This document shows, piece after piece, positions 953 to 42,171 of a DNA stretch of 64,000 bases. The notes under the pieces are model-generated. The model was not told the DNA's origin, did not search any database, and saw only the letters and a list, made by a program, of their open reading frames with translations. Where the stretch lies: the IMG/VR virus record IMGVR_UViG_3300027985_000843, positions 248,001 through 312,000 of that record. The stretch is one strand, 5' to 3'. The position numbers and the translations under genes were made by a program. Position 1 is the stretch's first letter; each line of letters begins with the position of its first letter.

Positions 953-1028
953 TGGTAGCCGGTGCGAGGATCGAACTCGCCTAGAACTGCTTGTAAAACA
1001 GCCACCGTCGCCAGACGGTTCACCGGCC
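953..1028 (-). tRNA. tRNA-Val(TAC), atypical D arm
   Basis: acceptor GGCCGGT/ACCGGCT, loop TTTACAA, T loop TTCGATC, CCA. Confidence 0.8.
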
Positions 1029-1550
1029 GTGAAGCACCTCCTGCACCCACAAGGTGTTGAGGCGGAGAATCTCCTCCCCGATGCGACGATTGATCTCTCG
1101 GTGGGCCTCGTACATACGGGGCGTAAACTTCCTGTATCGCAAGTGATCCATAGCGGTGCAATCATTCTTGACCCTAGCCCACCCCCACTTGGCGTCAACC
1201 TTCTGACCCCACAACAGAAGAGGCACCGCTTCATACCCGTCGTAGACGTAGTACGGGACGGGTTCGGGGATGCCCTTGAACGCCCGTCGACGGCCAATTT
1301 TACGGGCGATCCACCGAACGACGCAGAAGCCATACTCGCGATCCCGGCCACCAGCTCCATACTCGAAGCCGATACGGCACTTCCCACGGTCGTACACCAG
1401 CTCCTTCTCGGTGAGAGGGCCGTGGATGCCGGAGGTCTCCCAGCTCAAGCCCATGAAGGTGTGAAAGGGTCGGTAGTTCAGGCTCAAGAACTCGACCATC
1501 CTGGCCTGAGCCTTGCGACTCCGGCAGGGCACTGCGATGGCGTAGCCCAT
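1020..1550 (-). CDS. hypothetical protein
   Basis: 176 aa ORF, coupled to upstream gene. Confidence 0.6.
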   Translation of the reverse strand: MGYAIAVPCRSRKAQARMVEFLSLNYRPFHTFMGLSWETSGIHGPLTEKELVYDRGKCRIGFEYGAGGRDREYGFCVVRWIARKIGRRRAFKGIPEPVPYYVYDGYEAVPLLLWGQKVDAKWGWARVKNDCTAMDHLRYRKFTPRMYEAHREINRRIGEEILRLNTLWVQEVLHGR

Positions 1551-1551
1551 G

Positions 1552-1830
1552 CTAGTCCTCGTTCAAGGTGCCCTTGTTGAGGATCAAAAGGCTCATAATC
1601 ACGAACCCCTCTTCAAGACCAGGGAACTCCCCGTGCTTCAAGAGGTGCGTCACCTTCGCGACCACATGTCGACCGGTGAACTTCTTCGTGATGGGGTTCC
1701 ATTCATGCAGGTCCAACAGAGACCCGACCTCGAAGCCACGGTCATCCTTCCGCAGCTCGTAGGTCTTGATACCGTCCCAGACAGCCATGAAAGCCGAGGG
1801 CCATGTCTTGAGCCTATGTAGCTTCTGCAT
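1552..1830 (-). CDS. DUF3850/ASCH (PUA-like) protein
   Basis: HRLKTWP..F..V..G.KTYELRKDDRGFEVG..L.L.EW pattern. Confidence 0.8.
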   Translation of the reverse strand: MQKLHRLKTWPSAFMAVWDGIKTYELRKDDRGFEVGSLLDLHEWNPITKKFTGRHVVAKVTHLLKHGEFPGLEEGFVIMSLLILNKGTLNED

Positions 1831-1848
1831 GACCCTAAGATACACCAC

Positions 1849-1935
1849 TGGTCGGCACGGGGGGAATTGAACCCCCACGGTCGCGAGGACCACCAGGGCC
1901 TAAACCTGGCGCGGCTGCCATTACGCCACGTGCCG
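1849..1935 (-). tRNA. tRNA-Leu(TAG)
   Basis: cloverleaf, loop TTTAGGC, long variable arm, CCA. Confidence 0.95.
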
Positions 1936-2008
1936 GTGCACGGCGCGGGAATCGAACCCGCCTATGCCATCGCGTGAAGATGGTGCCCTCCCAGAGTGCT
2001 AGCCGTGC
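1935..2008 (-). tRNA. tRNA-Val(CAC)
   Basis: acceptor GCACGGC/GCCGTGC, loop TTCACGC. Confidence 0.85.
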
Positions 2009-2010
2009 GT

Positions 2011-2086
2011 TGGATGGGGAGACGGGATTCGAACCCGTAACGGCCTGGGTCAAAGCCAGGTGCTCTACCGATTGAACTACTCCCCA
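2011..2086 (-). tRNA. tRNA-Gln(TTG)
   Basis: T1-A72 acceptor, loop CTTTGAC, CCA. Confidence 0.95.
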
Positions 2087-2087
2087 A

Positions 2088-2160
2088 TGGTCGCGATGAA
2101 GGGACTCGGACCCTTGCGGTCACGGTTATGAGCCGAGCCGGTCACCTTGACGCACCGCGA
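2088..2160 (-). tRNA. tRNA-Met(CAT)-like, atypical
   Basis: acceptor TCGCGGT/ATCGCGA, loop CTCATAA, T loop TCCGAGT (not TTC), mismatch in anticodon stem. Confidence 0.65.
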
Positions 2161-2265
2161 ATTTATCCCATTGTGCCCCAACCATCATTGGGAACACGAC
2201 CATCCATGAGGGGCGCCTCCCGCCTCGGGACATCGTGAATGCACTTGTGGTTCATATCACTTGAA

Positions 2266-3270
2266 ATGCAACGAATTCTGCTAGTAGAAGACAGCCCGTC
2301 GGACAGAGAAATCTTGAAGTACCTGCTCGAAGAGCAGTTCAAGAAGGAGGTCGTTCTACACGAAGCTCCGTCACTGTCCAAGGCAGTAGAGATTCTCGAC
2401 AAAGAGGGTATCGATTGTGTCGTGCTTGACCTTCAGCTGCCGGACTCCGCAGGTAAAGAGACGTTCCAAAAGCTGTACGCCAGGTACTCACACATCCCGT
2501 TCATCGTGATGACCAACAATAAGGACCGCTTGCTGGCCGTCGAGATGATCCAGCTCGGAGCCGCAGACTTCGTCCTGAAGAATTACACCGACGAGGAAGA
2601 CATCTTCCGACGCATCGTGTTCGCGATCGAAAAGCACAAGAGGAGCGTTCGGGTGGACCCTACTGAAGCGGACAGCTTCCGGCGCGTGTCGAGCGCCAAT
2701 TTCAGGTTGGTGCAAGCTCAGGAGGACGACGCTAGCCCCAGCACCATTCGGAACATCCAAGTCGAGACGACAGCAGCTGTTGCGGATCTGTCCCGCAAAA
2801 CGTTCGCGGCTCTCCAGGAGATCAACATCAGCTTCGCGAAGAACAACATGCAGTGGAGCGAGGTCGCGAAGACAGTTGCCATCCTCGACAAGGAGCTTCT
2901 CAGGGGGCATTCCAACAGGCCCAGCATGCGGTCGCAGATGGACCTGATGGACCATCGCATTCAGGTTCTCGAAGGCGAGGTCAACGGCTTGCAAGAAGAC
3001 GTCACCGAGACGAACATCACAGCCATCAAAGAGAACAACCAGACGGCTCGCACCAAACTGTCCATGTGGACCAAGCTGCTGATCGCGCTCCTGACCCTGC
3101 TCGGTGTTCTCGCCACCGCCGCCGCCACCTACTTCGCCGCCGCTGCCAACGCCAGCAAGAAGGAATACGAGTCCCTGAAGGACTACGACGCCTTGAGGGC
3201 GGCATCCACCGCTGCGGCACCGAAGAAAGCCCCGGCAACCCTAGACCCAAATCCAAAGAGTAGCAAATGA
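2266..3270 (+). CDS. response-regulator receiver fused to coiled coil and C-terminal TM segment
   Basis: ILLVEDS, VVLDLQLPDS (phospho-Asp), GAADFVLK; hydrophobic LLIALLTLLGVLATAAATYF. Confidence 0.85.
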   Translation: MQRILLVEDSPSDREILKYLLEEQFKKEVVLHEAPSLSKAVEILDKEGIDCVVLDLQLPDSAGKETFQKLYARYSHIPFIVMTNNKDRLLAVEMIQLGAADFVLKNYTDEEDIFRRIVFAIEKHKRSVRVDPTEADSFRRVSSANFRLVQAQEDDASPSTIRNIQVETTAAVADLSRKTFAALQEINISFAKNNMQWSEVAKTVAILDKELLRGHSNRPSMRSQMDLMDHRIQVLEGEVNGLQEDVTETNITAIKENNQTARTKLSMWTKLLIALLTLLGVLATAAATYFAAAANASKKEYESLKDYDALRAASTAAAPKKAPATLDPNPKSSK

Positions 3271-4418
3271 CTGACACCACGAGGCCCGTTCCGGAACCCC
3301 TCCCGGAATGCGACTACGACTATCAGTGCCCGCGAAGAGAGATTCTCAGCCGGCTGTACGGGATCATGAAGGCCATCCCCGATTCTGTGTTCGAGATCGA
3401 CAGAGAGGGGCGGCATCTGTTCGTGCATGCCAACGGGGATACCCCTACGGACCCAAGACGGATCAAGGGGATGACCCTTCAGGAGCTGCTACCCGAAGAC
3501 ATTGTCGAGCCCACCATGCAGGCCATTCAACAAGTCCTGGAGACGGGGCAAAACATGACCCTGGACTACTCCATCCCACCCGCCGAAGGCAGCGGCGGTC
3601 CGGTGAGGCACCTCCAGGCGCACCTAGGCCGAACGCCCAACATGACCGTCGTGGCGATCGTCCGAAATGTGTCTGACCTGGTCGAACACCAGAAGAAGCT
3701 CCTCGAAGCAAACCAAGCCCTCACCCAATTCACATCCCTCGTCTCCCACGACCTGCGAGAACCCCTCACCGGGATTGCAGGCTTCGCTACCCTGTTGCAA
3801 AACCGCTACGAGGGCGATCTCGACGAACGAGGCCAACACTTCCTGGACCGGATCGTGGAGGTGTCGAAGCAAATGGAGAAAAAGCTGGACGACCTTCTCG
3901 CTTTTTCAAAGGCCGGAAAGGAGACGCCCTTCGAGCCCTTCCCCTTCGGAGCCGCCGTAGAGGAGGCAAAACGAGCCCTAGTACGAAAAATCGCTACCAC
4001 TGGAACGCGCATCGAGATCGTCGGAGAGTTGCCAATCGTGCACGGGGATCGAAGTCTTATCGCTCAAGTCTTGCAGAATCTGTTTTCGAACTCGATCAAG
4101 TACAGACGGAAAGACGAGACGCCCCACATTACGATCGAGGTAACCTCTCACGACCTTCCCTTCTGGAAAGTTGCCGTGAAGGACAATGGTATCGGCTTCG
4201 ATATGCGACACCGGGACAAGATTTTTGGAGTTTTCCAGCGCCTGTACACGGTCGAGCAGTACCCTGGAACAGGAATCGGCCTCGCTATCGCACGCCGTAT
4301 CATCGAGCGCCATGGGGGAGACATCTGGCCTTGGTCCGAACCAGGAGCCGGAGCCACATTCTACTTCACTCTACCCAAACCGACGGTCGACGATCATGGT
4401 GGATATCCTGCTGGTTGA
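3267..4418 (+). CDS. PAS-domain sensor histidine kinase (HisKA + HATPase)
   Basis: SHDLREPL H-box, QNLFSNSIKY N-box, DNGIGF G1, GTGIGL G2. Confidence 0.95.
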   Translation: MTDTTRPVPEPLPECDYDYQCPRREILSRLYGIMKAIPDSVFEIDREGRHLFVHANGDTPTDPRRIKGMTLQELLPEDIVEPTMQAIQQVLETGQNMTLDYSIPPAEGSGGPVRHLQAHLGRTPNMTVVAIVRNVSDLVEHQKKLLEANQALTQFTSLVSHDLREPLTGIAGFATLLQNRYEGDLDERGQHFLDRIVEVSKQMEKKLDDLLAFSKAGKETPFEPFPFGAAVEEAKRALVRKIATTGTRIEIVGELPIVHGDRSLIAQVLQNLFSNSIKYRRKDETPHITIEVTSHDLPFWKVAVKDNGIGFDMRHRDKIFGVFQRLYTVEQYPGTGIGLAIARRIIERHGGDIWPWSEPGAGATFYFTLPKPTVDDHGGYPAG

Positions 4419-4836
4419 AGACAATTCCGTAGACGCCGAGCTGTTCATCGAGGCGTTTAGCGATGCATGCAAGTGTGATCCGGTCATCAGTGTCGTATCA
4501 GACGGAGAAGAGGCCCTCAAGGCCATCCACGAGGGCCCTAGGCCGACCTTCGTCCTGCTCGACCTGAACCTACCCAAGATGGGGGGCCTGGACGTCCTGA
4601 AGGCCATCAGGCTCGATGACGATCCCGAGGTCAACCTGATGCCGGTGATCATTCTCACCAACTCCAAGTTGCCCCAGGACGTACGAAGGGCCTACCGACA
4701 CAGGTGCAATGCCTTCGTCCAAAAGCCCATTGGGTACCCACAGCTATTGGACATGGCACGCAAACTCAACCACTTCTGGTGCCAGTGCGCCATCCTACCG
4801 AACCAACGGAACACCCCCGTTCCGCCTTCCATCTAG
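4396..4836 (+). CDS. single-domain response regulator (Rcp1-like)
   Basis: ILLVEDN, VLLDLNLPKMGG, ILTNS, AFVQKP. Confidence 0.9.
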   Translation: MVDILLVEDNSVDAELFIEAFSDACKCDPVISVVSDGEEALKAIHEGPRPTFVLLDLNLPKMGGLDVLKAIRLDDDPEVNLMPVIILTNSKLPQDVRRAYRHRCNAFVQKPIGYPQLLDMARKLNHFWCQCAILPNQRNTPVPPSI

Positions 4837-4840
4837 CCTA

Positions 4841-4914
4841 GCCTCCCCGGCTGGGCTCGAACCAGCATCTTGACCTTCGGAGGGTCACGTGATTTCCTTT
4901 TCACTACGAGGAGA
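4841..4914 (-). tRNA. tRNA-Arg(CCG)
   Basis: cloverleaf, loop CTCCGAA, no encoded CCA. Confidence 0.85.
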
Positions 4915-4921
4915 TACACAC

Positions 4922-4997
4922 TGGAGTCCACGGAGGGATTCGAACCCTCAACCTTTGGCTTCGAAGGCCACTGCACTATCCATTGTGCTACGCGGAC
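4922..4997 (-). tRNA. tRNA-Arg(TCG)
   Basis: cloverleaf, loop CTTCGAA, CCA. Confidence 0.95.
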
Positions 4998-5051
4998 ACA
5001 ACGCCACAACCCGTGGTATACAATAGCGTCAAGTTTTTTTTTTCAAATCCT

Positions 5052-5080
5052 CCGAACCTTCATCGTCGAGGGGCGTAGTA
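5052..5080 (+). promoter_or_regulatory. ECF-type promoter-like motif CCGAAC-N16-CGTAGTA
   Basis: one of 9 copies; ATG 5 nt downstream. Confidence 0.75.
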
Positions 5081-5085
5081 CGATC

Positions 5086-7500
5086 ATGAAAGCGACAACA
5101 ATCGCACTAGCAATAGTGGCGACGACTATCCTGGGGTGTGGAAACCCCGTAGACGTGTTCGGGGATCCCCTCAACGTTGACAGTGACAGCGCGGTCGACG
5201 GAGGGCAGGACGAGGGTACTGACATCACCCCAGATGTAGATTCGGCCACCCCAGATGTGGGTGAAGATACCGATGCTGGCACGGACAGCGACGTTCCCGA
5301 TGAATATGTCCCTGACGGAGACGCCCAAGAGGATGTTGTCGAGGAGCCTGATGCGGCGCCTGTTTGCACCCCCGACACCACCCGCTGCACTGGCCTCGCG
5401 GTCGAAACCTGCAATGCCGACGGTACAGCATGGGAAATGACCAAGACATGTCCCTATCTGTGCGATGAGGGAGCCTGCTCCGGGGAGTGTCAACCAGGTT
5501 CCAGTCAATGTGCCTGGAACGACCTCCAGATATGCGACACCCAAGGATCGTGGACGACCACAGTGGTGTGCCCTTACGTCTGCTCAAACGGGGCATGCGC
5601 CGGAGAGTGTGTCCCTGGCAGCAAGAAGTGCGATGGCCTCGTCCCGCAACTCTGTGAAGCCGACGGGCACTGGGTCAACTTCACAGCGTGCTCTCAGATG
5701 TGCACGGCCGGGGAATGTGCCTTTGGTTGCTCGACGGGCGAGACCATATGCAACGGCCTCCAGGTCCAGGTCTGCAACGCCAACCATGCGTGGGAAGTCA
5801 CGCAGACGTGCCCCTACGCCTGCTCGGGCGGGGCATGCACGGGCCTGTGCGTGCCCGGAGCCACACAGTGCTCCGGCGATTCCGTCCAGATGTGCAGCAC
5901 CCAAGGCCAATGGAGCATGGAGACATCCTGTCCCAACACATGTCTCAACGGGACCTGTGTGAACTGTACCCCCGGCGAGCGAGTCTGCGATGGCACGGGC
6001 TACAAGGAGTGCGGCTCCACGGGCATGTGGGGCGCGGTTGTCCCGTGTGCGGGCGACGCGAACGCGAGCCCGACTTGCACGGGGGCCGGCGTGTGCGGGT
6101 GGACCTGCAACCCGGGCTACGCCGACTGCACGAGCGGGGCCGGATGCGAGAGCAACCTGAATGACCCATCGACTTGCGGTTCGTGCTCGAACTCCTGTGA
6201 TGGGACCAACGGAACCCCAACGTGCACGAGCGGGACGTGCGGCATCACGTGCAACCCAGGATGGGCCAACTGTGGGAGCGGGGCCGGGTGCGAGACACCT
6301 CTGGGTACGATGACCAACTGCCAGGCATGCGGCGACTCCTGTGGGTCATCATCGCTTCCGAACTCGGAGGTGACCTGTGAGCCCACGGAGGGGTGCGTAA
6401 CGTCCTGTGAGCAAACATGGGGCGACTGCGATGGCATCGTATCCAACGGGTGCGAGCACAACGTGTGGAGCGACCCCGACAACTGCGGAGCGTGCGGGGT
6501 GACTTGCTACGGAGGGACCTGCTCGGCCGGCGTGTGCAGCCAGGACCTTGAGGTGGTGTCGGTGAGTCCTGCGAAGATCAACGCAGTCGACATCGACGCA
6601 ACACACGTCTACTGGTCGACCACGGGAGCAACGGGACCCTTCTACATCTACCGGGCCCCGAAGGCGGGCGGCCCAGCAGAGCTTCTCACGACCACCGCAG
6701 GCCAGGCGTACCCCATCGTTGTCGTTGGGTCGTACGTCGTCTTTCACGACAGCTCCACCCACGCTATCAACCGGATTCCCAAGACGGGCGGAAGCATCTC
6801 CACCATCACGAGCCCTGGCTACGCCCTCTGGGACATCGCGACGGACGGGACCAACATCTTCTGGACCGACGCAGATGGGATCCCATGCAACTGCTCGAAT
6901 CCGAGCCCTGACCACGTATATCGAATGCCCGTGACAGGCGGGGTCCAGGAGACAGTCGCGACCTACAAGTACGAGCTGACGGGGTGGATCGAAGCCGACG
7001 CTGACCGACTCTACGTGACCAGTCGAGGCATCTGGTACCCGAGCATCAGCCAATACCAGGGAGGGCTGTACTACGCCGGCACGGTCTCCACGAACCTGGT
7101 CATGAACTCGGGGCCGACGGTGAGCACCGTCTACGACCTCGGGCAAGGGCAATACTTCGAGCAGGTCGGTGACGTGGCGGTCAACGACACCCACGCGTTC
7201 TTCTACGTCCAGCCCAACTACTCGGGTTCGATGGTGGTCCGAGTCCAGAAGGGAGCTGCGGTCACGGAGAAGGTTGCCGAAGGGGCTTCGAGCTACGGCT
7301 TCAAGGCCGACACCTCCAACTTCTACTGGACCGAAAGCACCATGATCCACAGGACTTCCGTGAACGGAAGCACAACTGAGACCTTCGTCTCGGGGCAACT
7401 TGGGACGAATCAGATCCGCCTCGACGACACCCACGCCTACTGGAAGGTGGCGGGATATACCGGAACGTCAGTTTACGCCATCATGAGGGCGGAAAAATAG
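5086..7500 (+). CDS. large Cys-rich repeat lipoprotein with C-terminal beta-propeller-like domain
   Basis: signal peptide ending ILGC, acidic linker, repeated C..G..W.....C...C..G.C units, YWT/YWS blade repeats; myxobacterial-style surface protein. Confidence 0.85.
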   Translation: MKATTIALAIVATTILGCGNPVDVFGDPLNVDSDSAVDGGQDEGTDITPDVDSATPDVGEDTDAGTDSDVPDEYVPDGDAQEDVVEEPDAAPVCTPDTTRCTGLAVETCNADGTAWEMTKTCPYLCDEGACSGECQPGSSQCAWNDLQICDTQGSWTTTVVCPYVCSNGACAGECVPGSKKCDGLVPQLCEADGHWVNFTACSQMCTAGECAFGCSTGETICNGLQVQVCNANHAWEVTQTCPYACSGGACTGLCVPGATQCSGDSVQMCSTQGQWSMETSCPNTCLNGTCVNCTPGERVCDGTGYKECGSTGMWGAVVPCAGDANASPTCTGAGVCGWTCNPGYADCTSGAGCESNLNDPSTCGSCSNSCDGTNGTPTCTSGTCGITCNPGWANCGSGAGCETPLGTMTNCQACGDSCGSSSLPNSEVTCEPTEGCVTSCEQTWGDCDGIVSNGCEHNVWSDPDNCGACGVTCYGGTCSAGVCSQDLEVVSVSPAKINAVDIDATHVYWSTTGATGPFYIYRAPKAGGPAELLTTTAGQAYPIVVVGSYVVFHDSSTHAINRIPKTGGSISTITSPGYALWDIATDGTNIFWTDADGIPCNCSNPSPDHVYRMPVTGGVQETVATYKYELTGWIEADADRLYVTSRGIWYPSISQYQGGLYYAGTVSTNLVMNSGPTVSTVYDLGQGQYFEQVGDVAVNDTHAFFYVQPNYSGSMVVRVQKGAAVTEKVAEGASSYGFKADTSNFYWTESTMIHRTSVNGSTTETFVSGQLGTNQIRLDDTHAYWKVAGYTGTSVYAIMRAEK

Positions 7501-7536
7501 TCTTGACCTGAACAGGCGATGGTGTAGGATAGTGTC

Positions 7537-7704
7537 ATGAACCCTACTACATCAGAATGGTTTGCGTCTTTGGCGCCGAAAGAACGGAAGGGTCTGGTGT
7601 GCCTCCTCTTCGGCATTCGAGGCGAGCTTGAACTGCGACCGAGGTACCCTCTCTTCCTGGAGTTCATTCGGGTCCTCGACAATGAGTATCACAGCCTGAA
7701 GTAG
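7537..7704 (+). CDS. small hypothetical protein (55 aa, below ORF-track cutoff)
   Basis: MNPTTSEWFASLAPKERKGLVCLLFG...; ATG 10 nt after GGTGTA. Confidence 0.5.
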   Translation: MNPTTSEWFASLAPKERKGLVCLLFGIRGELELRPRYPLFLEFIRVLDNEYHSLK

Positions 7705-7780
7705 TGGCATCCCCGGAGGGATTCGAACCCTCACCGAACGGCTTAGAAGGCCGCTGCCCTATCCGTTGGGCGACGGGGAC
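7705..7780 (-). tRNA. tRNA-Arg(TCT)
   Basis: cloverleaf, loop CTTCTAA, CCA. Confidence 0.95.
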
Positions 7781-7781
7781 A

Positions 7782-7856
7782 TGGAGGCGACGGTGGGAAT
7801 CGAACCCACGAATGACTGTTTTGCAGACAGCTCCCTTACCACTTGGGTACGTCGCC
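7782..7856 (-). tRNA. tRNA-Cys(GCA)
   Basis: cloverleaf, loop CTGCAAA, U73, CCA. Confidence 0.95.
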
Positions 7857-7882
7857 ATTTTACCTATGGATATGCAAGGGGC

Positions 7883-8167
7883 ATGGAACCCATTGTCGCA
7901 CGCATCGTCCAACGGTACCTGAGGACCGTGGAAGCTTTCAAGTACCAGCCCCAAGAGAAGAAAAAGACCAAGGTCGACCGGATCAAGAAGCTCATCCGGG
8001 ACGAGACCGGCCTCCCCAATAGTGCTGCTGAAGGCATCGCAGACGCTCTCGTGCGAGGTCGGGACCTCGACGCCCTGGCGGTACAGAAGGACTGGCCTAT
8101 CGAGAACGGGACCATTGAGGGTCCCAAGGGCTCTCTTTCGGTCAAGAAAGTGAAGGACAGTCTGTGA
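7883..8167 (+). CDS. hypothetical protein with IVARIVQRYL leader
   Basis: 94 aa ORF, overlaps next start (GTGA). Confidence 0.7.
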   Translation: MEPIVARIVQRYLRTVEAFKYQPQEKKKTKVDRIKKLIRDETGLPNSAAEGIADALVRGRDLDALAVQKDWPIENGTIEGPKGSLSVKKVKDSL

Positions 8168-8637
8168 AAATCCTGATCGTCGAGGATAGCCTGGCCGATC
8201 GTGAACTTCTGGTCTTCGCCCTTCAAGAGAACTTCAAGACCGAAGCCAAGTTCCGAGAGGCCGACAGCCTGAAGTCCGCCCACGACTACCTGAGGCGCGG
8301 CGGCTTCGACTGTGTCATCCTCGACCTTCATCTGCCCGACTCATCAGGCATCGACACCTTTCTGCTGCTTCACGACGCCTACCCTGATGTTCCGATCGTG
8401 GTCGTGAGCAACACCAACGACTTCCGGCTGGCTCTCAGGATGATCCGGCTCGGGGCCGACGACTTCATCGTCAAGAACTTCACCGACCCCGACATGGTCT
8501 TTCGGAGGGTGGCTTTCGCCATCGAGAGGAACAGCCGTGACCGGCCACCCCCGAGCATCCTTTCGGATATCGGTGACCTTGGGGACCTCGATGACGATCC
8601 CCCGCCTGACACTCTACCGTCAAGAGCAGACCCATGA
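8164..8637 (+). CDS. response regulator receiver protein
   Basis: ILIVEDS, VILDLHLPDS, GADDFIVK. Confidence 0.9.
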   Translation: MKILIVEDSLADRELLVFALQENFKTEAKFREADSLKSAHDYLRRGGFDCVILDLHLPDSSGIDTFLLLHDAYPDVPIVVVSNTNDFRLALRMIRLGADDFIVKNFTDPDMVFRRVAFAIERNSRDRPPPSILSDIGDLGDLDDDPPPDTLPSRADP

Positions 8638-9347
8638 TCCACGACTACGACAGATCCAAGCCTTCGTACGATTACGACCGAACCTTTCTGACGTACGATC
8701 GTAGTAGAGACATGAGCCACACCGCGTCCGACATCCCTGAAGGCTACGATGCCGACGAATGGGACGACATGGACGAGGACGAGCGAGGTCGGGCTCTCAC
8801 GGAACTCACAACTCAACAGAGCAAGACACACGCAAGCATTCGATCTTGGATCAACAGATCCAAAGTCCGGGCACCCAACCCGGTCCCCAAGTATCGTACG
8901 ATCACGACCTTTGCCACGATCGACAACGACATCCGAGATGATGAGCATGGTGTTGTCATCGGGTTTGAAGCCAACACCAGCGATGGGAGCCTCGGAGACG
9001 ACGATCAGGGGCAAGGGTTTCTCACGGTCGAACACGACAATGCCCGGTACAGCAGCGTCCACGGAAACAAGACCTTCGACCTCTCGAAGGGGGCGGATGC
9101 GTTGGTCGACTTCCTCGCTGACCGGCAGAAGGTTTTCACCGTGAAGCTAAAGGTCTTGGCTGCCTTGTTCAAGCATACGCACATGACAGACAGTGACTTG
9201 GGCAGCGACGAGACCCTTTATCAAATCGGCTTGTGGGAACCCGGCAAAGACCCGACGAAGTTCCTCAAGCAGTTCATTAAAGACACAGGTACAGACCCGG
9301 CCACGCTCCCCGAGTTGGTCAAGGTCGTCAAGAAGGTACGATCATGA
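8634..9347 (+). CDS. hypothetical protein with triple (Y)DYDR leader
   Basis: MIHDYDRSKPSYDYDRTFLTYDRS; coupled ATGA overlaps. Confidence 0.75.
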   Translation: MIHDYDRSKPSYDYDRTFLTYDRSRDMSHTASDIPEGYDADEWDDMDEDERGRALTELTTQQSKTHASIRSWINRSKVRAPNPVPKYRTITTFATIDNDIRDDEHGVVIGFEANTSDGSLGDDDQGQGFLTVEHDNARYSSVHGNKTFDLSKGADALVDFLADRQKVFTVKLKVLAALFKHTHMTDSDLGSDETLYQIGLWEPGKDPTKFLKQFIKDTGTDPATLPELVKVVKKVRS

Positions 9348-10021
9348 ACATCTACGACTACGACCGAACCGCTGCGGCCACCCCCATGAGCGCTGAGGAG
9401 TTCAAGCGGGAGGTCGAGAAGCACCTGAACATCGGCGACCGTCAGGTGAGCGTGCGAGTGGACACGAGCTTCGGGACCGTCGGCGTGTACATCAACCTTG
9501 TCAACCTCCCGAAGGGTGTGGGCGGGGCCGGGGGCGGGGCGGAAGCCGAAAACAATCGGATGATGTTCTCGGTGAGGTTCCCAGACAATCCTGCCGACAA
9601 GGTCAAGGTGGAACAGACCGTCTCCAGGATGGATCGCAAGTACAAGATGCGAGCGAAGTCCGGCCACCCGGCACAGGTGGCGAAGTACGTCGCCGACTTC
9701 ATCAACAAGGTGGTGAAAGAAGTCGAGCCGAAGTTCACCCACACCAAGCAAGCCTACGACTACGATCGGTCGGGGAGCTACGACCGCTCTCGGAACGAAG
9801 TGAATCCAGGCGAACACGGAGTGTTGCAAACCATCTTCAAGTACCGTGATCGCAGCTTCGGGTACGCTACGTTGGCGAAACACCTCACCCCATTTCAACG
9901 AGGACTTGTCGACAAGCTCGTGAAAGAAGGCTACGTGAGGGAGGCAAAGAGCGACGAAGGCACAACCTACAAGCTCACATCAGACGGTGAGCGAGCCCTC
10001 AACAACTACAGGGGAACTTGA
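9344..10021 (+). CDS. hypothetical protein with N-terminal and internal YDYDR motifs; possible C-terminal winged helix
   Basis: MNIYDYDRTAAA...AYDYDRSGSYDRS...LVKEGYV...YKLTSDG. Confidence 0.75.
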   Translation: MNIYDYDRTAAATPMSAEEFKREVEKHLNIGDRQVSVRVDTSFGTVGVYINLVNLPKGVGGAGGGAEAENNRMMFSVRFPDNPADKVKVEQTVSRMDRKYKMRAKSGHPAQVAKYVADFINKVVKEVEPKFTHTKQAYDYDRSGSYDRSRNEVNPGEHGVLQTIFKYRDRSFGYATLAKHLTPFQRGLVDKLVKEGYVREAKSDEGTTYKLTSDGERALNNYRGT

Positions 10022-10093
10022 GCGGACGACGGGACTCGAACCCGCAACCCTCGACATGGGAAGCCGAAGCTCTACCAATTGAGCCACGTCCGC
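10021..10093 (-). tRNA. tRNA-Gly(CCC)
   Basis: cloverleaf, loop TTCCCAT, U73. Confidence 0.9.
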
Positions 10094-10096
10094 GAA

Positions 10097-10170
10097 TGGA
10101 GCGGGTAGTCGGACTCGAACCGACATTCCGAGGGTGGAAACCTCGTGCCCTGCCTTTGGACGATACCCGC
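10097..10170 (-). tRNA. tRNA-Gly(TCC)
   Basis: cloverleaf, loop TTTCCAC, CCA. Confidence 0.95.
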
Positions 10171-10195
10171 AAGACGGGCTTGCCCTCGAAGCCCC

Positions 10196-10270
10196 GGAGC
10201 CGGTGATGGGAATCGAACCCACAACTTCGTCCTTACCGAGGACGTGCTCTTCCAAATGAGCTTCACCGGC
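10196..10270 (-). tRNA. tRNA-Thr(GGT)
   Basis: cloverleaf, loop TCGGTAA. Confidence 0.9.
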
Positions 10271-10892
10271 GTAATTTATCCCAACGTTCGGCGGCATCCT
10301 CCCTGACCGTCATCTTCGACCTTCGACCTCGTACTTCGTCGAAAGTGAACACGTAGGCCGTGTCACTTTCGAAATCGTACCCTACGATGAAATCGAAGTC
10401 CGAAGCATCCAAGGGTCTAACACCCCACGCACCATCAGCACAGGTCACCTTGAACTCCGGCAACCCTCTGAGAGGGGCTGCCCACCGAACCTGCAACTTC
10501 TTCAAGCCTTTTGGGGTGCCCACCAACCAATCCACCCTGTCCCCATCGAACTCCGCTCGATAGACGTCAAAATCAAAAACAGCCAGTCTGAATAGCACTG
10601 CTGCCTCGGCGATCTTCATCTTCCGGCGTCTCTCGGAAGGGGACACTGATACAATCTGGGAAAACCCGGAAGGAGTCTCGCGGGCCTTTCTTCGAGTGCC
10701 CCCAGCTTTCAAGCTGCCCCGAACGATCTTTTCTCGTTTGAGATCGGTCGGCAACGGGAGGTCACGGAGCCAGCCACTCAGAGTCGCCTTAGGCACCCCA
10801 AGCAACCGATGGATTTCATTCAATGACAGGTGTTCATCTCGACGAAGCTCAACAGCTTTTGGCTTTAGGTGTAGGTAAGCGGCTTTTGGCAT
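10263..10892 (-). CDS. free-standing HTH + PD-(D/E)xK endonuclease (homing-endonuclease-like)
   Basis: SLNEIHRLLGVPKATLSGW HTH; RVDWLV...KKLQVR nuclease core; stop codon lies in 5' end of tRNA-Thr. Confidence 0.75.
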   Translation of the reverse strand: MPKAAYLHLKPKAVELRRDEHLSLNEIHRLLGVPKATLSGWLRDLPLPTDLKREKIVRGSLKAGGTRRKARETPSGFSQIVSVSPSERRRKMKIAEAAVLFRLAVFDFDVYRAEFDGDRVDWLVGTPKGLKKLQVRWAAPLRGLPEFKVTCADGAWGVRPLDASDFDFIVGYDFESDTAYVFTFDEVRGRRSKMTVREDAAERWDKLRR

Positions 10893-12217: not shown

Positions 12218-12751
12218 ATGGGACACCTTGAAGTCATCGCCGGCTCGATGTTCAGCGGCAAGACCGAAGAACTCGTCCGGAGGGTTCGCCGAGCTGTAAT
12301 CGCTCGGCAAAAAGTGCAAGCATTCAAACCTGTCGTTGACAATCGATACGACAAGGAGAGGATCGTCAGCCACTCAGGAGTCGCCATCGACGCGGTGCCC
12401 GTCCCCAATGCAGCAGCCATCGTTGGCCTGGTGGACAAGGACACGAAGGTCATCGCCATGGACGAGGTCCAGTTCTTCGATGCCGGTATCGTTGTCGTGG
12501 CGACCGAGCTAGCCGACAAGGACTACAGGGTCATCATGGCGGGCCTGGACCAAGACTACCTAGGGAATCCCTTTGGCTCGGTGCCCATCCTCATGGCCCT
12601 CGCAGAGAGAGTCACGAAGGTCCAAGCAATATGCTCTTGCTGCGGCCAGGAGGCGTCTAGAACGCAGAGAGTCGTCAATGAGGGTTCCACGGTCCTGGTC
12701 GGGGGCAAAGAGGCATACGAGGCCCGTTGCCGGGCTTGCCACAAGCCCTAG
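12218..12751 (+). CDS. tdk: thymidine kinase
   Basis: GSMFSGKT Walker A, IAMDEVQF, AGLDQDY, CSCC...YEARCRAC zinc site. Confidence 0.95.
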   Translation: MGHLEVIAGSMFSGKTEELVRRVRRAVIARQKVQAFKPVVDNRYDKERIVSHSGVAIDAVPVPNAAAIVGLVDKDTKVIAMDEVQFFDAGIVVVATELADKDYRVIMAGLDQDYLGNPFGSVPILMALAERVTKVQAICSCCGQEASRTQRVVNEGSTVLVGGKEAYEARCRACHKP

Positions 12752-13102: not shown

Positions 13103-14269
<1,167 letters not shown>

Positions 14270-18396: not shown

Positions 18397-18469
18397 ATGC
18401 TAGAGACAGGAATCGAACCTGTAACCAACGGCTTGATAGGCCGTAGCTCTACCTATGAGCTACTTTAGC
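18397..18469 (-). tRNA. tRNA with ATC anticodon (nominally Asp, A34) on a non-Asp body
   Basis: GCTAAAG/CTCTAGC, A73, ACGGC-CTATCAA-GCCGT, canonical D and T arms. Confidence 0.8.
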
Positions 18470-29497: not shown

Positions 29498-29555
29498 ATG
29501 CTGTGTCTCCTACGAGAGGGTGTGGCAAAAGAAGTTCTTGTGTCCGTCGAAAGGT

Positions 29556-29825
29556 ATGAGCATCTACGATTACGATCGCACAGCTGCTGCGGGGTCCCCT
29601 ACGGACAAGGTGAAGAAGATCGCGGCGAAGCTCGACAACGCCCAGTCCAGTGCGAATGCAGCCGTCAACTCGCTCAAGAGGCGGGAAGAGGGAGGTTTTA
29701 AGACTTGGGACAGCTTGAGCGGTTCGGACAAGGGCAAGATCGAGTCGGCCGTGTCTGAACTCGAAAAAGCTGCGAACGAAGCCTACCAGGCCAGCCGCAA
29801 GCTCTGGTCCCTTCTGGAACGGTAA
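29556..29825 (+). CDS. small helical protein with YDYDR leader
   Basis: MSIYDYDRTAAAG. Confidence 0.7.
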   Translation: MSIYDYDRTAAAGSPTDKVKKIAAKLDNAQSSANAAVNSLKRREEGGFKTWDSLSGSDKGKIESAVSELEKAANEAYQASRKLWSLLER

Positions 29826-40388: not shown

Positions 40389-40568
40389 ATGGGCAATCCA
40401 AGACTACCGAAGGTCCCCAAGAATCCGCCAGTGAGCAAGACCGTCCGGATGTCCGAGGAGTTATGGAACACGTTTCAGGGAGAGGCTAGGCTTCGCGGGA
40501 TATCCGTGACGGCCGCCTTCACCGAGGCTGTGGAGCTGTGGCTGAAGAAGGGGGTCACGTCAGGGTGA
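40389..40568 (+). CDS. ribbon-helix-helix DNA-binding protein
   Basis: KTVRMSEELW...F..EA...GIS...AF.EAV. Confidence 0.65.
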   Translation: MGNPRLPKVPKNPPVSKTVRMSEELWNTFQGEARLRGISVTAAFTEAVELWLKKGVTSG

Positions 40569-41778
40569 CAACTAAGGACTTGTCGGGGTCGGCTGGATCG
40601 GTCAAGACGAAGTCCTTGCCCTTCTTGTTCAGGGTCAAGTAGAGCACGTTTCGCAGAACACGCAGCTTCAGGACCTCTCGGGCATTACCGCCTCGAAGCA
40701 CCTCCAGCTGCAATCCCTTCTTGAGGGTGTCCGGCCACTCACCCCGCTTGCTCTTTACAACCAAGGTCGACTTGTCGGGGACAAGGTCACCCCGGGTGGG
40801 TTCTGTCTCGCCTGTCCAATTGATCAGCTGGCCGGCTTGGTCCACGAGCCGGCCAAAGCTCCCGCGAACCAACTCCTCTGCGGACTGGCTAAACACGATC
40901 TTCGTCTGATATTCGTAGTAGTCCATGTGGGAGAACTCCTCGGACTCTCGACGTTCTTCGCTCACCTCATCCTTGCCACCCATGTACTTGGCGAACTTTC
41001 GGATGTCTTCATCCACGAAAGCGTCGTCCTCTGGGACTTCGACATATGAATCCACGTCTTCCGGGTCATAGAACGATTCCGAATCCTCGTCTGTGCCATA
41101 TCGGGAGAAAGCCGGACCGGAGATAGTCATCTCAAGGACAAGCTTGCGTTTGAAGCTGAAGCTAGGGGACCGAAAATCTTCGATCTGTGCTTCTGTGTAG
41201 CCGTTTGCCCGCCGAAGAGCTTCGTAGCACCAGCTGGACAAGTCGACTTTCCGAGCTTCTTCCGTCAGCTTGTCGAGAAGGGTGTCAGCCATCCCCTGAC
41301 GGTAAAATGTGTCCTTGTCCCAGCGGGAGTGCTCGTCCGTGTCGTAGTTGTGTTCGATGGCCTTCTGGATCCACGCTACCCCGCCGGATTGTTTGACGAG
41401 GTAGTTGAGCATGGCGAAGATACCCGAGACAGCTGCGACCTTGGACCGGTCGTAGTTGTGGCAGCCCATCCGGAGATACCATCCGGTCTGCTTCTCGAAT
41501 AGCTCGGCGAGCTGGTCGGCATAGACCATCTCGAATTCTTTGACCTTCTTCGCACCCGAGCCCGACATGTTGAAGAACGTCATGTCGTAGGTGTCATCCG
41601 GTCGAAGCTCAATCTTGCAGGCGTTGCCCTTGCTTCGCTGCTTGTTGGGCCACTTGAAGGTCAGGCTGTTGGCCGTCGTGTTGATGATAGAGCCGCCCAG
41701 CATGACGAGGGCTCGCCGGCCCCCCAGCTGTTGCAGGATGGTGTCAGCGACGCTTGCAGTTCGGTCGTAGTCGGCCAT
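40555..41778 (-). CDS. multi-domain hypothetical protein with DYDR leader and internal NYDRS
   Basis: MADYDRTAS...CHNYDRSKVAA. Confidence 0.75.
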   Translation of the reverse strand: MADYDRTASVADTILQQLGGRRALVMLGGSIINTTANSLTFKWPNKQRSKGNACKIELRPDDTYDMTFFNMSGSGAKKVKEFEMVYADQLAELFEKQTGWYLRMGCHNYDRSKVAAVSGIFAMLNYLVKQSGGVAWIQKAIEHNYDTDEHSRWDKDTFYRQGMADTLLDKLTEEARKVDLSSWCYEALRRANGYTEAQIEDFRSPSFSFKRKLVLEMTISGPAFSRYGTDEDSESFYDPEDVDSYVEVPEDDAFVDEDIRKFAKYMGGKDEVSEERRESEEFSHMDYYEYQTKIVFSQSAEELVRGSFGRLVDQAGQLINWTGETEPTRGDLVPDKSTLVVKSKRGEWPDTLKKGLQLEVLRGGNAREVLKLRVLRNVLYLTLNKKGKDFVLTDPADPDKSLVVTLT

Positions 41779-41781
41779 GGT

Positions 41782-42171
41782 TCACCCCAACAGAGACTGG
41801 AGGGACTTGAGGCACGCCTGCCCGATCTCCATGGCAGCGCTGTCCTCGTCGAAGGTCTTTTCGATCCGCTTCGTCCCCCTCATGGGGTGGGCCAGGGTAA
41901 TCTCGGCCCTGAGGGTGTCCTTCCGCCACGCCAGTTCGATGGTGGCGTTCCAGGCGAAGTCGGATTTGTCGATGCCGTCGATCGTGAGCGTGGGGAACAC
42001 GCCCATGTTGTGGTGCATCGCACCTGCGCCGGGCAGGTGGTTCGCGAGTTCACTCACAGCGGTGATGACGTCATGAGCCCACTGTACCTTGATCTGCCAC
42101 ACGGTCATGTGCTGAAGGTTCAGTGACTTGGTTGCTGTCTTGCCGGAGGTTCTGTCGTAATCGTAGGGCAT
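41782..42171 (-). CDS. hypothetical protein with YDYDR leader
   Basis: MPYDYDRTSGKTA. Confidence 0.7.
   Translation of the reverse strand: MPYDYDRTSGKTATKSLNLQHMTVWQIKVQWAHDVITAVSELANHLPGAGAMHHNMGVFPTLTIDGIDKSDFAWNATIELAWRKDTLRAEITLAHPMRGTKRIEKTFDEDSAAMEIGQACLKSLQSLLG

Follow-up and report, generated by a model that had tools for sequence, protein, structure and literature searches.

A phage-encoded two-component system with a predicted membrane-anchored response regulator in the tRNA gene array of a huge phage

We analysed a 64,000-nucleotide window (positions 248,001 to 312,000) of the 371,739-bp virus record IMGVR_UViG_3300027985_000843, estimated to be 78% complete. Window positions 2266-8637 encode one soluble PAS-HisKA-HATPase histidine kinase (HK) and three receiver proteins (RR1-RR3), all on the + strand, within an array of 45 tRNA genes that all lie on the opposite strand. 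The features of the locus and its immediate surroundings are:

1849..2086 (-): tRNA-Leu(tag), tRNA-Val(cac) and tRNA-Gln(ttg), the tRNA block preceding the cassette, as predicted by ARAGORN.
2266..3270 (+): RR1, 334 aa; receiver domain, helical linker and coiled coil with the conserved motif LDKELLRGHSNRPSMRSQ, then a predicted C-terminal transmembrane helix.
3267..4418 (+): HK, 383 aa; N-terminal Cys pair (C15, C21), PAS_4, HisKA (His161) and HATPase_c; its start overlaps the RR1 stop (ATGA).
4396..4836 (+): RR2, a single-domain Rcp1/RcpA-like receiver of 146 aa; overlaps the 3' end of the kinase gene by 23 nt.
4841..4997 (-): tRNA-Arg(ccg) and tRNA-Arg(tcg), antisense to the cassette.
5086..7500 (+): predicted lipoprotein of 804 aa.
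7705..7856 (-): tRNA-Arg(tct) and tRNA-Cys(gca), antisense.
7883..8167 (+): ORF94, a conserved 94-aa helical protein; its stop overlaps the RR3 start (GTGA).
8164..8637 (+): RR3, a single receiver of 157 aa with an acidic, Pro-rich tail.
8634..10021 (+): ORF237 and ORF225, translationally coupled to RR3 (ATGA overlaps).

The preliminary description of the locus had recognized the four signalling genes, the retained phospho-acceptor Asp, the absence of a DNA-binding output domain and the motif ECDYDYQC near the kinase N-terminus, and our analysis confirms these observations; it had not listed the four tRNAs, the lipoprotein gene or ORF94 within the interval. Start/stop overlaps link RR1-HK-RR2 and, separately, ORF94-RR3-ORF237-ORF225. 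No sigma-70-like promoter or terminator pattern above chance flanks the cassette.

The kinase matches PAS_4 (E 2.9e-08), HisKA (6.8e-15) and HATPase_c (4.3e-26) in Pfam, and a hydropathy scan found no hydrophobic segment. The H-box SHDLREPL with the phospho-accepting His161, the N-box (N271/N275), the G1-box (D306-N-G-x-G), F320/F323 and the G2-box (G334-T-G-I-G-L) are invariant across 15 orthologues. Inactivity of the kinase had been named in advance as an outcome that would overturn the interpretation; the sequence gives it no support, although autophosphorylation and phosphotransfer were not assayed. Among solved structures, the kinase core is closest to HK853-like and bacteriophytochrome kinase modules. 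Its H-box reads HDLREP, with Glu four residues after the His, as is typical of the COG4251-type HisKA kinases found in Cph1/Rcp1- and bacteriophytochrome-type kinase-regulator pairs. Several orthologues are named bacteriophytochrome or Cph1 photoreceptor kinases by JGI, but only PAS_4 lies N-terminal to HisKA in the window's kinase, with no GAF or PHY hit, so that the photosensory core is absent and the likeness is confined to the kinase module. Nor is it a LOV blue-light sensor, as the flavin-binding motif with the reactive Cys (NCRFL) is absent and a partial CRFL match occurs in only 1 of 120 family members.

All three receivers match Response_reg (RR1, 3.8e-21; RR2, 8.4e-17; RR3, 6.5e-20). 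In an alignment of 14 receivers, the acidic pair (E7, D8), the phospho-acceptor Asp (D54) and the Lys (K104) are invariant columns, and Thr or Ser occupies the conserved position. No Pfam DNA-binding domain of the OmpR, NarL, LytTR or NtrC type is present in any of the three, and NCBIfam matches cover the receiver only and lie far below the cut-offs. The nearest solved structures to RR2 are the phytochrome-type regulators RcpA and Rcp1 (E 1e-16 to 1e-22; RcpA 1.5e-17, Rcp1 4e-16, a bacteriophytochrome-linked regulator 2.8e-19), which together with its single-domain architecture and its position directly downstream of the kinase supports the earlier description of RR2 as Rcp1-like. An RR2-like gene also lies directly downstream of 22 of 78 cellular kinase relatives. 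RR3 is paralogous to the receiver of RR1, with 49% identity. The genome contains exactly one HisKA, three receivers and no Hpt domain, which does not fit a His-Asp-His-Asp phosphorelay; ORF94 contains no histidine and is therefore not an Hpt.

RR1 combines its receiver with helices at residues 132-243 and a C-terminal hydrophobic helix at about residues 265-293 (mean Kyte-Doolittle 2.1), as seen in an alignment of 23 orthologues, hydropathy analysis and an AlphaFold2 model with a mean pLDDT of 77.6. A word search found this C-terminal domain only behind a receiver (17 hits). A full profile search of 1.84e9 representative proteins gave 45 hits, of which all full-length ones carry about 126 residues in front. 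Among these representatives the domain occurs only behind a receiver or as small stand-alone tail-anchored proteins, an unusual output. The domain is related to small stand-alone tail-anchored proteins of 143-191 aa (hhalign 99.1%), although this match is partly circular, because the stand-alone proteins were picked by the profile of the output domain, and coiled-coil plus membrane-helix composition can inflate such scores. Fold searches with RR1 matched only the receiver domain and the adjoining helix. In one related phage contig (L004), the receiver of RR1 is fused instead to another membrane domain, DUF1003, whose function is itself unknown and to which the window's RR1 has no match. Membrane attachment is therefore the conserved trait.

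The remaining genes are less clearly connected to the signalling core. The 804-aa protein has a signal peptide ending ILGC, an acidic linker, Cys-rich repeats and a C-terminal region with recurring YW(S/T) motifs, which by eye resembles a beta-propeller, an inference that was not tested; it has no Pfam, PHROG or NCBIfam hit. A homolog occurs in L004 (38% identity over 704 aa) and a 774-aa ORF sits at the same position in the related contig L110, but the gene is present between RR2 and RR3 in only some relatives and is probably not part of the core. The model of ORF94 (mean pLDDT 74.5) shows three helices plus a beta-hairpin, without a significant fold match (best E 0.88). ORF237 and ORF225 both begin with a DYDR(S/T) motif. 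The C-terminus of ORF225 gives only a weak, below-threshold Pfam hint (DUF4364, E 0.0083) and looks winged-helix-like by eye, again untested, while its N-terminal half is conserved downstream of RR3 in the related contig L002. Membership of both ORFs in the signalling system is uncertain.

A chromosomal origin of the contig had likewise been specified beforehand as grounds for rejecting the interpretation. This is not what we find, as the record contains the large terminase (phrog_2, 3.2e-22), portal (phrog_16240, 4.7e-24) and prohead protease (phrog_18299, 1.6e-13) of a tailed phage (Caudoviricetes), together with clamp loader, GroEL, EF-Tu and tmRNA genes. The trio RR1-HK-RR2 is present in all 12 related contigs that we sampled (10-452 kb). 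Where tRNAs flank it they come in the same order, and a tmRNA lies upstream. The tRNA-Leu/Val/Gln block precedes RR1 in the same order in contigs L001, L004, L006, L109 and L110, the tRNA-Arg(ccg)/tRNA-Arg(tcg) pair has the same position in relatives, and the tRNA-Arg(tct)/tRNA-Cys(gca) pair precedes ORF94/RR3 in relatives. Orthologues of RR3 occur in L002, L004, L006, L109 and L110, but RR3 and ORF94 are missing from several relatives, so that only the trio is core.

The cassette diverges with the phage backbone and is not a recent host capture. Terminase and kinase identities fall together across relatives (terminase/kinase pairs of 82/65, 68/59, 67/56 and 45/35%), and 120 metagenome kinase cores separate from the 78 best cellular ones on one branch with support 100, with an identity to cellular kinases of at most 45%. 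The sensor end is swapped freely and can be one PAS, another PAS type, two PAS or none. An N-terminal Cys pair, here within ECDYDYQC (residues 14-21), recurs and is present in 27 of 34 kinases that lack a PAS domain; Cys frequency is 0.028 in the first 30 residues against 0.0078 elsewhere. However, 65 of 120 family members lack an N-terminal Cys, and the PAS domain has no diagnostic cofactor motif; no signal ligand can be named. The clade-wide synteny and vertical inheritance, the exchangeable sensor, the recurrence of the Cys pair and the stand-alone viral relatives of the RR1 output domain were not part of the preliminary description.

Kinase and receiver genes in phages are not unheard of, as the cassette proteins match the PHROG families phrog_731, phrog_857 and phrog_10912 (E 1e-20 for RR1, 7e-22 for RR3, 6e-41 and 1e-37 for the kinase), and Microcoleus phage My-WqHQDG also has a kinase next to a receiver gene. 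These matches cover only the receiver and kinase cores, and the families are annotated as unknown function or, for phrog_10912, as kinase. No GenBank phage holds a kinase more than 33% identical, and the nearest GenBank phage by terminase (LR745208.1, 45-49%) lacks the kinase. A literature search found no paper describing this cassette. Compared with Cph1/Rcp1-type pairs, the system is phage-borne, has a single PAS_4 domain in place of a GAF or PHY photosensory core, and has two further receivers, one of them membrane-anchored. One kinase gene with three receiver genes, two of them single-domain, also recalls branched pathways with phosphate-sink receivers, such as CheA with CheY1/CheY2 in Sinorhizobium, but there are no chemotaxis components or Hpt and a sink role is inference only.

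We consider it somewhat more likely than not that this is a functional two-component circuit that belongs to the phage and is inherited vertically within a clade of huge phages. In this view, a soluble, dimeric HisKA kinase would read an intracellular cue, most plausibly redox, metal or a small metabolite, through its exchangeable N-terminal module and Cys pair, autophosphorylate on His161 and pass the phosphoryl group to the Asp of its three receivers. RR1 would be the effector, its receiver held at the cytoplasmic face of the inner membrane by helical segments and the C-terminal membrane helix; phosphorylation would change how this tail-anchored module associates and so switch a membrane process during infection. 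RR2 and RR3 would be single-domain branches that act as phosphate sinks or competitors, or through protein contacts. Gene content, intact motifs, phage location, synteny, co-divergence with the backbone and the restricted distribution of the RR1 output domain rest directly on our data, whereas phosphotransfer to all three receivers, the nature of the signal and the membrane target are inferred in the absence of expression or biochemical data. The earlier interpretation is thus partly supported: a complete two-component set on a phage, a cytoplasmic kinase and output at the protein or membrane level hold, while its suggestions of lysis timing and of cross-talk with host developmental signalling remain untested guesses.

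The suggestion that RR1 gates lysis or membrane permeability, as a phospho-regulated holin, antiholin or other pore regulator responding to the host's energy or redox state, is unlikely. RR1 is a tail-anchored coiled-coil protein, one of the small stand-alone relatives of its output domain lies on a phage-like contig next to a head-tail adaptor hit, and the nearest language-model neighbours are small viral proteins, although scores below 0.9 make this a lead only. However, no endolysin, holin or spanin is near the cassette, and Phage_lysozyme, SLT and Amidase_2 were not found anywhere in the incomplete record. A single membrane helix without a lysis PHROG match, and a search for endolysins with three families, leave membership among holins, antiholins or spanins undecided, and the idea rests on topology alone. 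We regard host take-over, in which the phage kinase phosphorylates host regulators or the phage receivers drain phosphate from host kinases and so rewire development, motility or stress responses, as similarly doubtful. The HK-RR2 pair is a common cellular module, so the interface type exists in bacteria, and three receivers for one kinase leave room for sinks. Yet the best cellular kinase matches are only 31-45% identical and scattered over many phyla, no host-like partner stands out for a phage whose host is unknown, and co-inheritance of the phage kinases and receivers as a closed set fits an insulated pathway better.

Less likely still is transcriptional control through separate DNA-binding partners, in which RR3, and perhaps RR2, would work with ORF94 and ORF225 as a split response regulator. 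The translational coupling, the conservation of ORF94 (43-62% identity, often just upstream of RR3), its predicted helical fold and the weak DUF4364 hit are compatible with this, but ORF94 lacks a significant fold match, occurs without RR3 in L001 and is absent beside RR3 in L004, and the winged-helix-like part of ORF225 is not conserved next to the cassette in relatives. That the cassette is a passenger or mis-binned host DNA is very improbable. Kinase-like fragments in many GenBank 'phage' records do look like host contamination, and the cassette is on the opposite strand to nearly all neighbouring genes, but this reading is contradicted by the hallmark genes, the trio in 12 of 12 related contigs at the same site with conserved catalytic residues, the co-divergence with the terminase and the separate kinase clade.

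A bolder possibility, which our data do not rule out but which we consider unlikely, is that a whole clade of huge phages carries a private sensory circuit as part of its core genome. Its kinase, with a plug-in sensor of various PAS types or only a Cys pair, would read the host's internal redox or metabolic state and, through a tail-anchored response regulator found in no cellular genome searched, switch a membrane event during infection. This would be a virus-owned decision system built from two-component parts, with an output domain new to two-component signalling.

Although neither the signal nor the target is known, related huge phages inherit the core of this set at the same spot in their tRNA gene array, so these viruses probably sense something inside the host cell for themselves.

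The window (bases 248,001-312,000) belongs to a 371,739-bp virus record, about 59% G+C, with a CheckV completeness of 78%. ARAGORN finds 45 tRNA genes between 371 and 28,034, all on the - strand, and our own codon-usage gene calls together with Pfam place a run of + strand genes between the tRNA blocks. In window coordinates, the interval contains:

2266-3270 (+), RR1, 334 aa: receiver, helical region and C-terminal membrane helix
3267-4418 (+), HK, 383 aa: PAS_4, HisKA and HATPase_c
4396-4836 (+), RR2, 146 aa: single receiver
4841-4997 (-), two tRNA-Arg genes
5086-7500 (+), predicted lipoprotein, 804 aa
7705-7856 (-), tRNA-Arg and tRNA-Cys
7883-8167 (+), ORF94, 94 aa: conserved, helical
8164-8637 (+), RR3, 157 aa: single receiver
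8634-9347 (+), ORF237, 237 aa: begins with a DYDR motif
9344-10021 (+), ORF225, 225 aa: begins with a DYDR motif

The preliminary description had reported a kinase and three receivers inside the tRNA array, and this observation held. Start and stop codons overlap at RR1/HK (ATGA), HK/RR2 (23 nt), ORF94/RR3 (GTGA), RR3/ORF237 and ORF237/ORF225, giving two translationally coupled blocks. The genome holds exactly three receiver domains, one HisKA domain and no Hpt. The starts of RR2, the lipoprotein gene and ORF225 are each preceded by the same string, (t/g)acgatc, directly before ATG (4371-4395, 5061-5085 and 9319-9343), which is possibly chance; genome-wide, about half of the confident genes have a GGAG-like motif upstream, against 15% at random positions. 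A promoter and terminator consensus scan of 1500-10400 gave fewer sites than in shuffled sequence. The only sigma-70-like promoter match in the region, TTGACC-16-TAGGAT at 7503-7530, precedes a 55-aa ORF of undetermined coding status at 7537-7704 (+), between the lipoprotein gene and tRNA-Arg(tct).

Loss of kinase activity had been named in advance as an outcome that would overturn the signalling interpretation, and it finds no support in the sequence. In an alignment of 15 orthologous kinases, the H-box SHDLREPL (His161), N271 and N275, D306-N-G-x-G, F320 and F323, and G334-T-G-I-G-L are invariant. In 14 receivers of the three types, the acidic pair, the phospho-acceptor Asp and the Lys are invariant, and Thr or Ser occupies the expected position. 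A hydropathy scan of the kinase showed no hydrophobic segment. The nearest solved relatives of RR2 are RcpA, Rcp1 and a bacteriophytochrome-linked regulator (E 1e-16 to 1e-22), so that its earlier label as Rcp1-like stands, and RR3 is 49% identical to the receiver of RR1. The residue four positions after the His is Glu rather than Thr or Asn. In HisKA kinases this suggests weak phosphatase activity, which would make extra receivers useful as sinks, although this is inference.

A chromosomal origin of the contig, the other circumstance singled out beforehand as fatal to the reading, does not apply: the contig is from a phage. It encodes a large terminase (genome 210,556-212,562), a portal (206,975-208,807), a prohead protease, clamp loader, NAD-ligase, ribonucleotide reductase and a GroEL (244,320-245,978). 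A full-length elongation factor Tu at window 13103-14269 (-) scores 532 bits against TIGR00485, above the cut-off of 522, and is 90% identical to the copy in the related 441-kb phage contig L001; EF-Tu genes also occur near the cassette in the related contig L109. A tmRNA with the tag ANDNSAMPVAA lies just upstream of the window at genome 247,554-247,919 (-) (L020:19554-19919).

The cassette appears to be the phage's own. A word search with the kinase returned 120 close hits, and each of the nine contexts examined, on contigs of 10-441 kb, shows the same neighbourhood. GroEL, a VWA protein, an HNH protein or DUF3850 lie upstream on the opposite strand, followed by an RR1-like gene of about 300 aa, the kinase and an RR2-like gene of about 150 aa. 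A scan of IMG/VR with the RR1 alignment added three more, of 82, 182 and 452 kb, the last being 94% complete. Where tRNAs flank the cassette they keep the same order: Leu(tag), Val(cac) and Gln(ttg) come before RR1, Arg(ccg) and Arg(tcg) follow RR2, Arg(tct) and Cys(gca) come before ORF94/RR3, and Gly(ccc) and Gly(tcc) follow. All are antisense to the cassette. A tmRNA, with a tag beginning ANDN, lies a few kb upstream at the same relative position in relatives.

This tRNA order is conserved across phages whose proteins are only 50-65% identical, with protein genes on the opposite strand interleaved between the tRNA blocks, including the cassette, thymidine kinase at 12218-12751 and others. 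The fixed antisense placement raises the question of how these genes are transcribed relative to the tRNAs; there are no expression data. Within the array, ARAGORN also reports a tRNA of undetermined type with a two-base anticodon call (gg) at 953-1042 (-) and a tRNA-Asp with the unusual anticodon ATC at 18398-18469 (-); these two were not examined further.

Kinase identity falls in step with terminase identity across four related records.

Terminase and kinase identity to the phage studied here.
G004: terminase 82%, kinase 65%
G001: terminase 68%, kinase 59%
G002: terminase 67%, kinase 56%
G003: terminase 45%, kinase 35%

The large terminases of G004 (G004:C1:96738-100031) and G002 (G002:C1:37034-40345) match in two pieces within one open frame of about 1,100 aa, against 668 aa here, which suggests an in-frame insertion such as an intein; the ribonucleotide reductase of another related contig, L002, has intein and LAGLIDADG hits. 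A FastTree of 198 kinase cores puts all 120 metagenome hits on one side of a branch with support 100, and the 78 best matches from species-representative cellular genomes on the other. Those cellular matches are 34-45% identical over the core and come from many phyla. A near-identity DNA search of GenBank phages gave no match, and a tblastn search of GenBank phages with the kinase gave at most 33% identity, with many hits in short 'phage' records that look like host fragments. The nearest GenBank phage by terminase (LR745208.1, 485 kb, 45-49%) has no kinase, and the cassette therefore marks a subclade. Together this argues for old acquisition and vertical descent, not a recent host capture.

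The kinase core is constant but its N-terminus is not. We observed at least four architectures: one PAS_4-like domain as here, one PAS_9/PAS_3-type domain, two PAS domains (about 475 aa), or no PAS at all (about 250 aa). A LOV identity for the PAS_9-type orthologues was rejected, as none of the architectures has the LOV cysteine motif (NCRFL). A cysteine pair at the extreme N-terminus recurs, as C-P-L-P-E-G-x-x-C in 27 of 34 PAS-less kinases, CxxC in others, C-x3-C in the closest relative and C15-x5-C21 here, the last corresponding to the ECDYDYQC pointed out in the preliminary description. Cys is 3.6 times more frequent in the first 30 residues than in the rest of the protein. In a dimer this gives four thiols at the top of the DHp helices, and we therefore propose a redox or metal site, although the pair is absent from 65 of 120 members and so cannot be the only input.

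ECDYDYQC resembles, but is not the same as, a motif of neighbouring proteins. Five predicted proteins begin with M-x(0-2)-(Y)DYDR(S/T):

8634-9347 (+), ORF237, with extra internal copies
9344-10021 (+), ORF225, with extra internal copies
29520-29825 (+), predicted protein
40555-41778 (-), predicted protein
41782-42171 (-), predicted protein

Only six YDYD strings occur in the six-frame translation of the whole 372-kb genome, and five are in these genes. The motif, for which we have no explanation, may be a shared N-terminal tag or mark a paralogue family; it was not seen within 10 kb of the cassette in 12 related loci.

At the output end, the 200-residue tail of RR1 is conserved in 23 orthologues. 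It has the nearly invariant stretch LDKELLRGHSNRPSMRSQ-D, a variable helical segment, a basic patch and a membrane helix ending in A-T-Y. AlphaFold2 predicts helices 132-153, 158-213, 221-243 and 267-316 (mean pLDDT 77.6). Fold searches with this model against the PDB and Atlas matched only the receiver and its adjoining helix, and no paralogue of the output domain was found elsewhere in the genome. A word search found the tail only behind a receiver (17 proteins). A profile search of 1.84 billion representatives found 45 proteins, of which the full-length ones all carry about 126 residues in front, while the weakest hits are stand-alone proteins of 143-191 aa with the same G-x-P-S motif, basic patch and membrane helix. 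A profile-profile comparison with these stand-alone proteins gives 99.1% probability, with the caveats of partial circularity and composition bias, and one of them lies on a small contig beside a head-tail adaptor hit. In one related phage (L004) the tail is replaced by a different membrane domain, DUF1003. The conserved property is therefore a receiver held at the membrane. Neither of the two cellular kinase relatives that have an RR1-like receiver gene directly upstream shares this tail.

ORF94 is conserved at 43-62% identity and often precedes RR3, but it occurs without RR3 in L001, and RR3 occurs without it in L004. An Hpt identity was rejected, since ORF94 contains no His and the genome has no Hpt. 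Its predicted model has three helices and a hairpin but gave no significant match in a fold search, and an Atlas search gave only weak helical look-alikes. PDB sequence searches with ORF94 and ORF225 returned nothing. A complex prediction of ORF94 with the RR3 receiver gave no verdict (score 0.00), which is no evidence either way. The 804-aa gene starts with a lipoprotein-type signal peptide ending ILGC, followed by an acidic Asp/Thr-rich linker, many Cys-rich repeats (C-x-P-G...C) and a C-terminal region with recurring YW(S/T) motifs, which by inference resembles a beta-propeller. It has no family match. L004 has a BLAST-confirmed homologue, and a 774-aa ORF sits at the same place in the related contig L110. 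We regard the gene as an insertion in the cassette, not a signalling part. It suggests a diderm host and an envelope-directed function; its signal peptide and the tmRNA tag beginning ANDN are the only hints to the host, which was not identified.

The best-supported reading is a closed, phage-owned, branched circuit, in which the kinase senses an intracellular cue, RR1 is the membrane effector, and RR2 and RR3 are single-domain branches. Gene content, intact motifs, phage location, synteny, the co-divergence with the terminase and the restricted distribution of the RR1 output domain are shown, whereas phosphotransfer to all three receivers, the roles within the circuit, the nature of the signal, the membrane target and a sink function are inferred. 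The interpretation in the preliminary description is partly supported: its lysis timing and host cross-talk are possible, as is a split regulator with ORF94 or ORF225, but all three have little or no direct support. None of the endolysin families PF00959, PF01464 and PF01510 was found in the 78%-complete record. The lysis idea could not be tested by position. Passenger DNA is contradicted by the conservation data.

Kinase and receiver families exist in PHROGs, and one cyanophage record has a kinase next to a receiver, so the parts are not new to phages. We found no description of this conserved trio, its tail-anchored regulator or its fixed place in the tRNA array in the literature searched, including comparative papers on jumbo and huge phages and recent huge-phage preprints, although that coverage was incomplete and this is absence of evidence only. 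Phages eavesdrop on host signals, for example through quorum-sensing receptors or arbitrium peptides, but a complete, conserved kinase-plus-receivers circuit within the inherited gene set of a huge-phage lineage has not, as far as we could find, been described. If it works as proposed, large phages would make infection decisions from intracellular cues with their own phosphorelay hardware, and a membrane-anchored output class would be added to the response-regulator repertoire. In that case the natural series of sensor swaps on one kinase core (PAS types, double PAS, Cys pair only) would be a ready-made system for studying how inputs are rewired.
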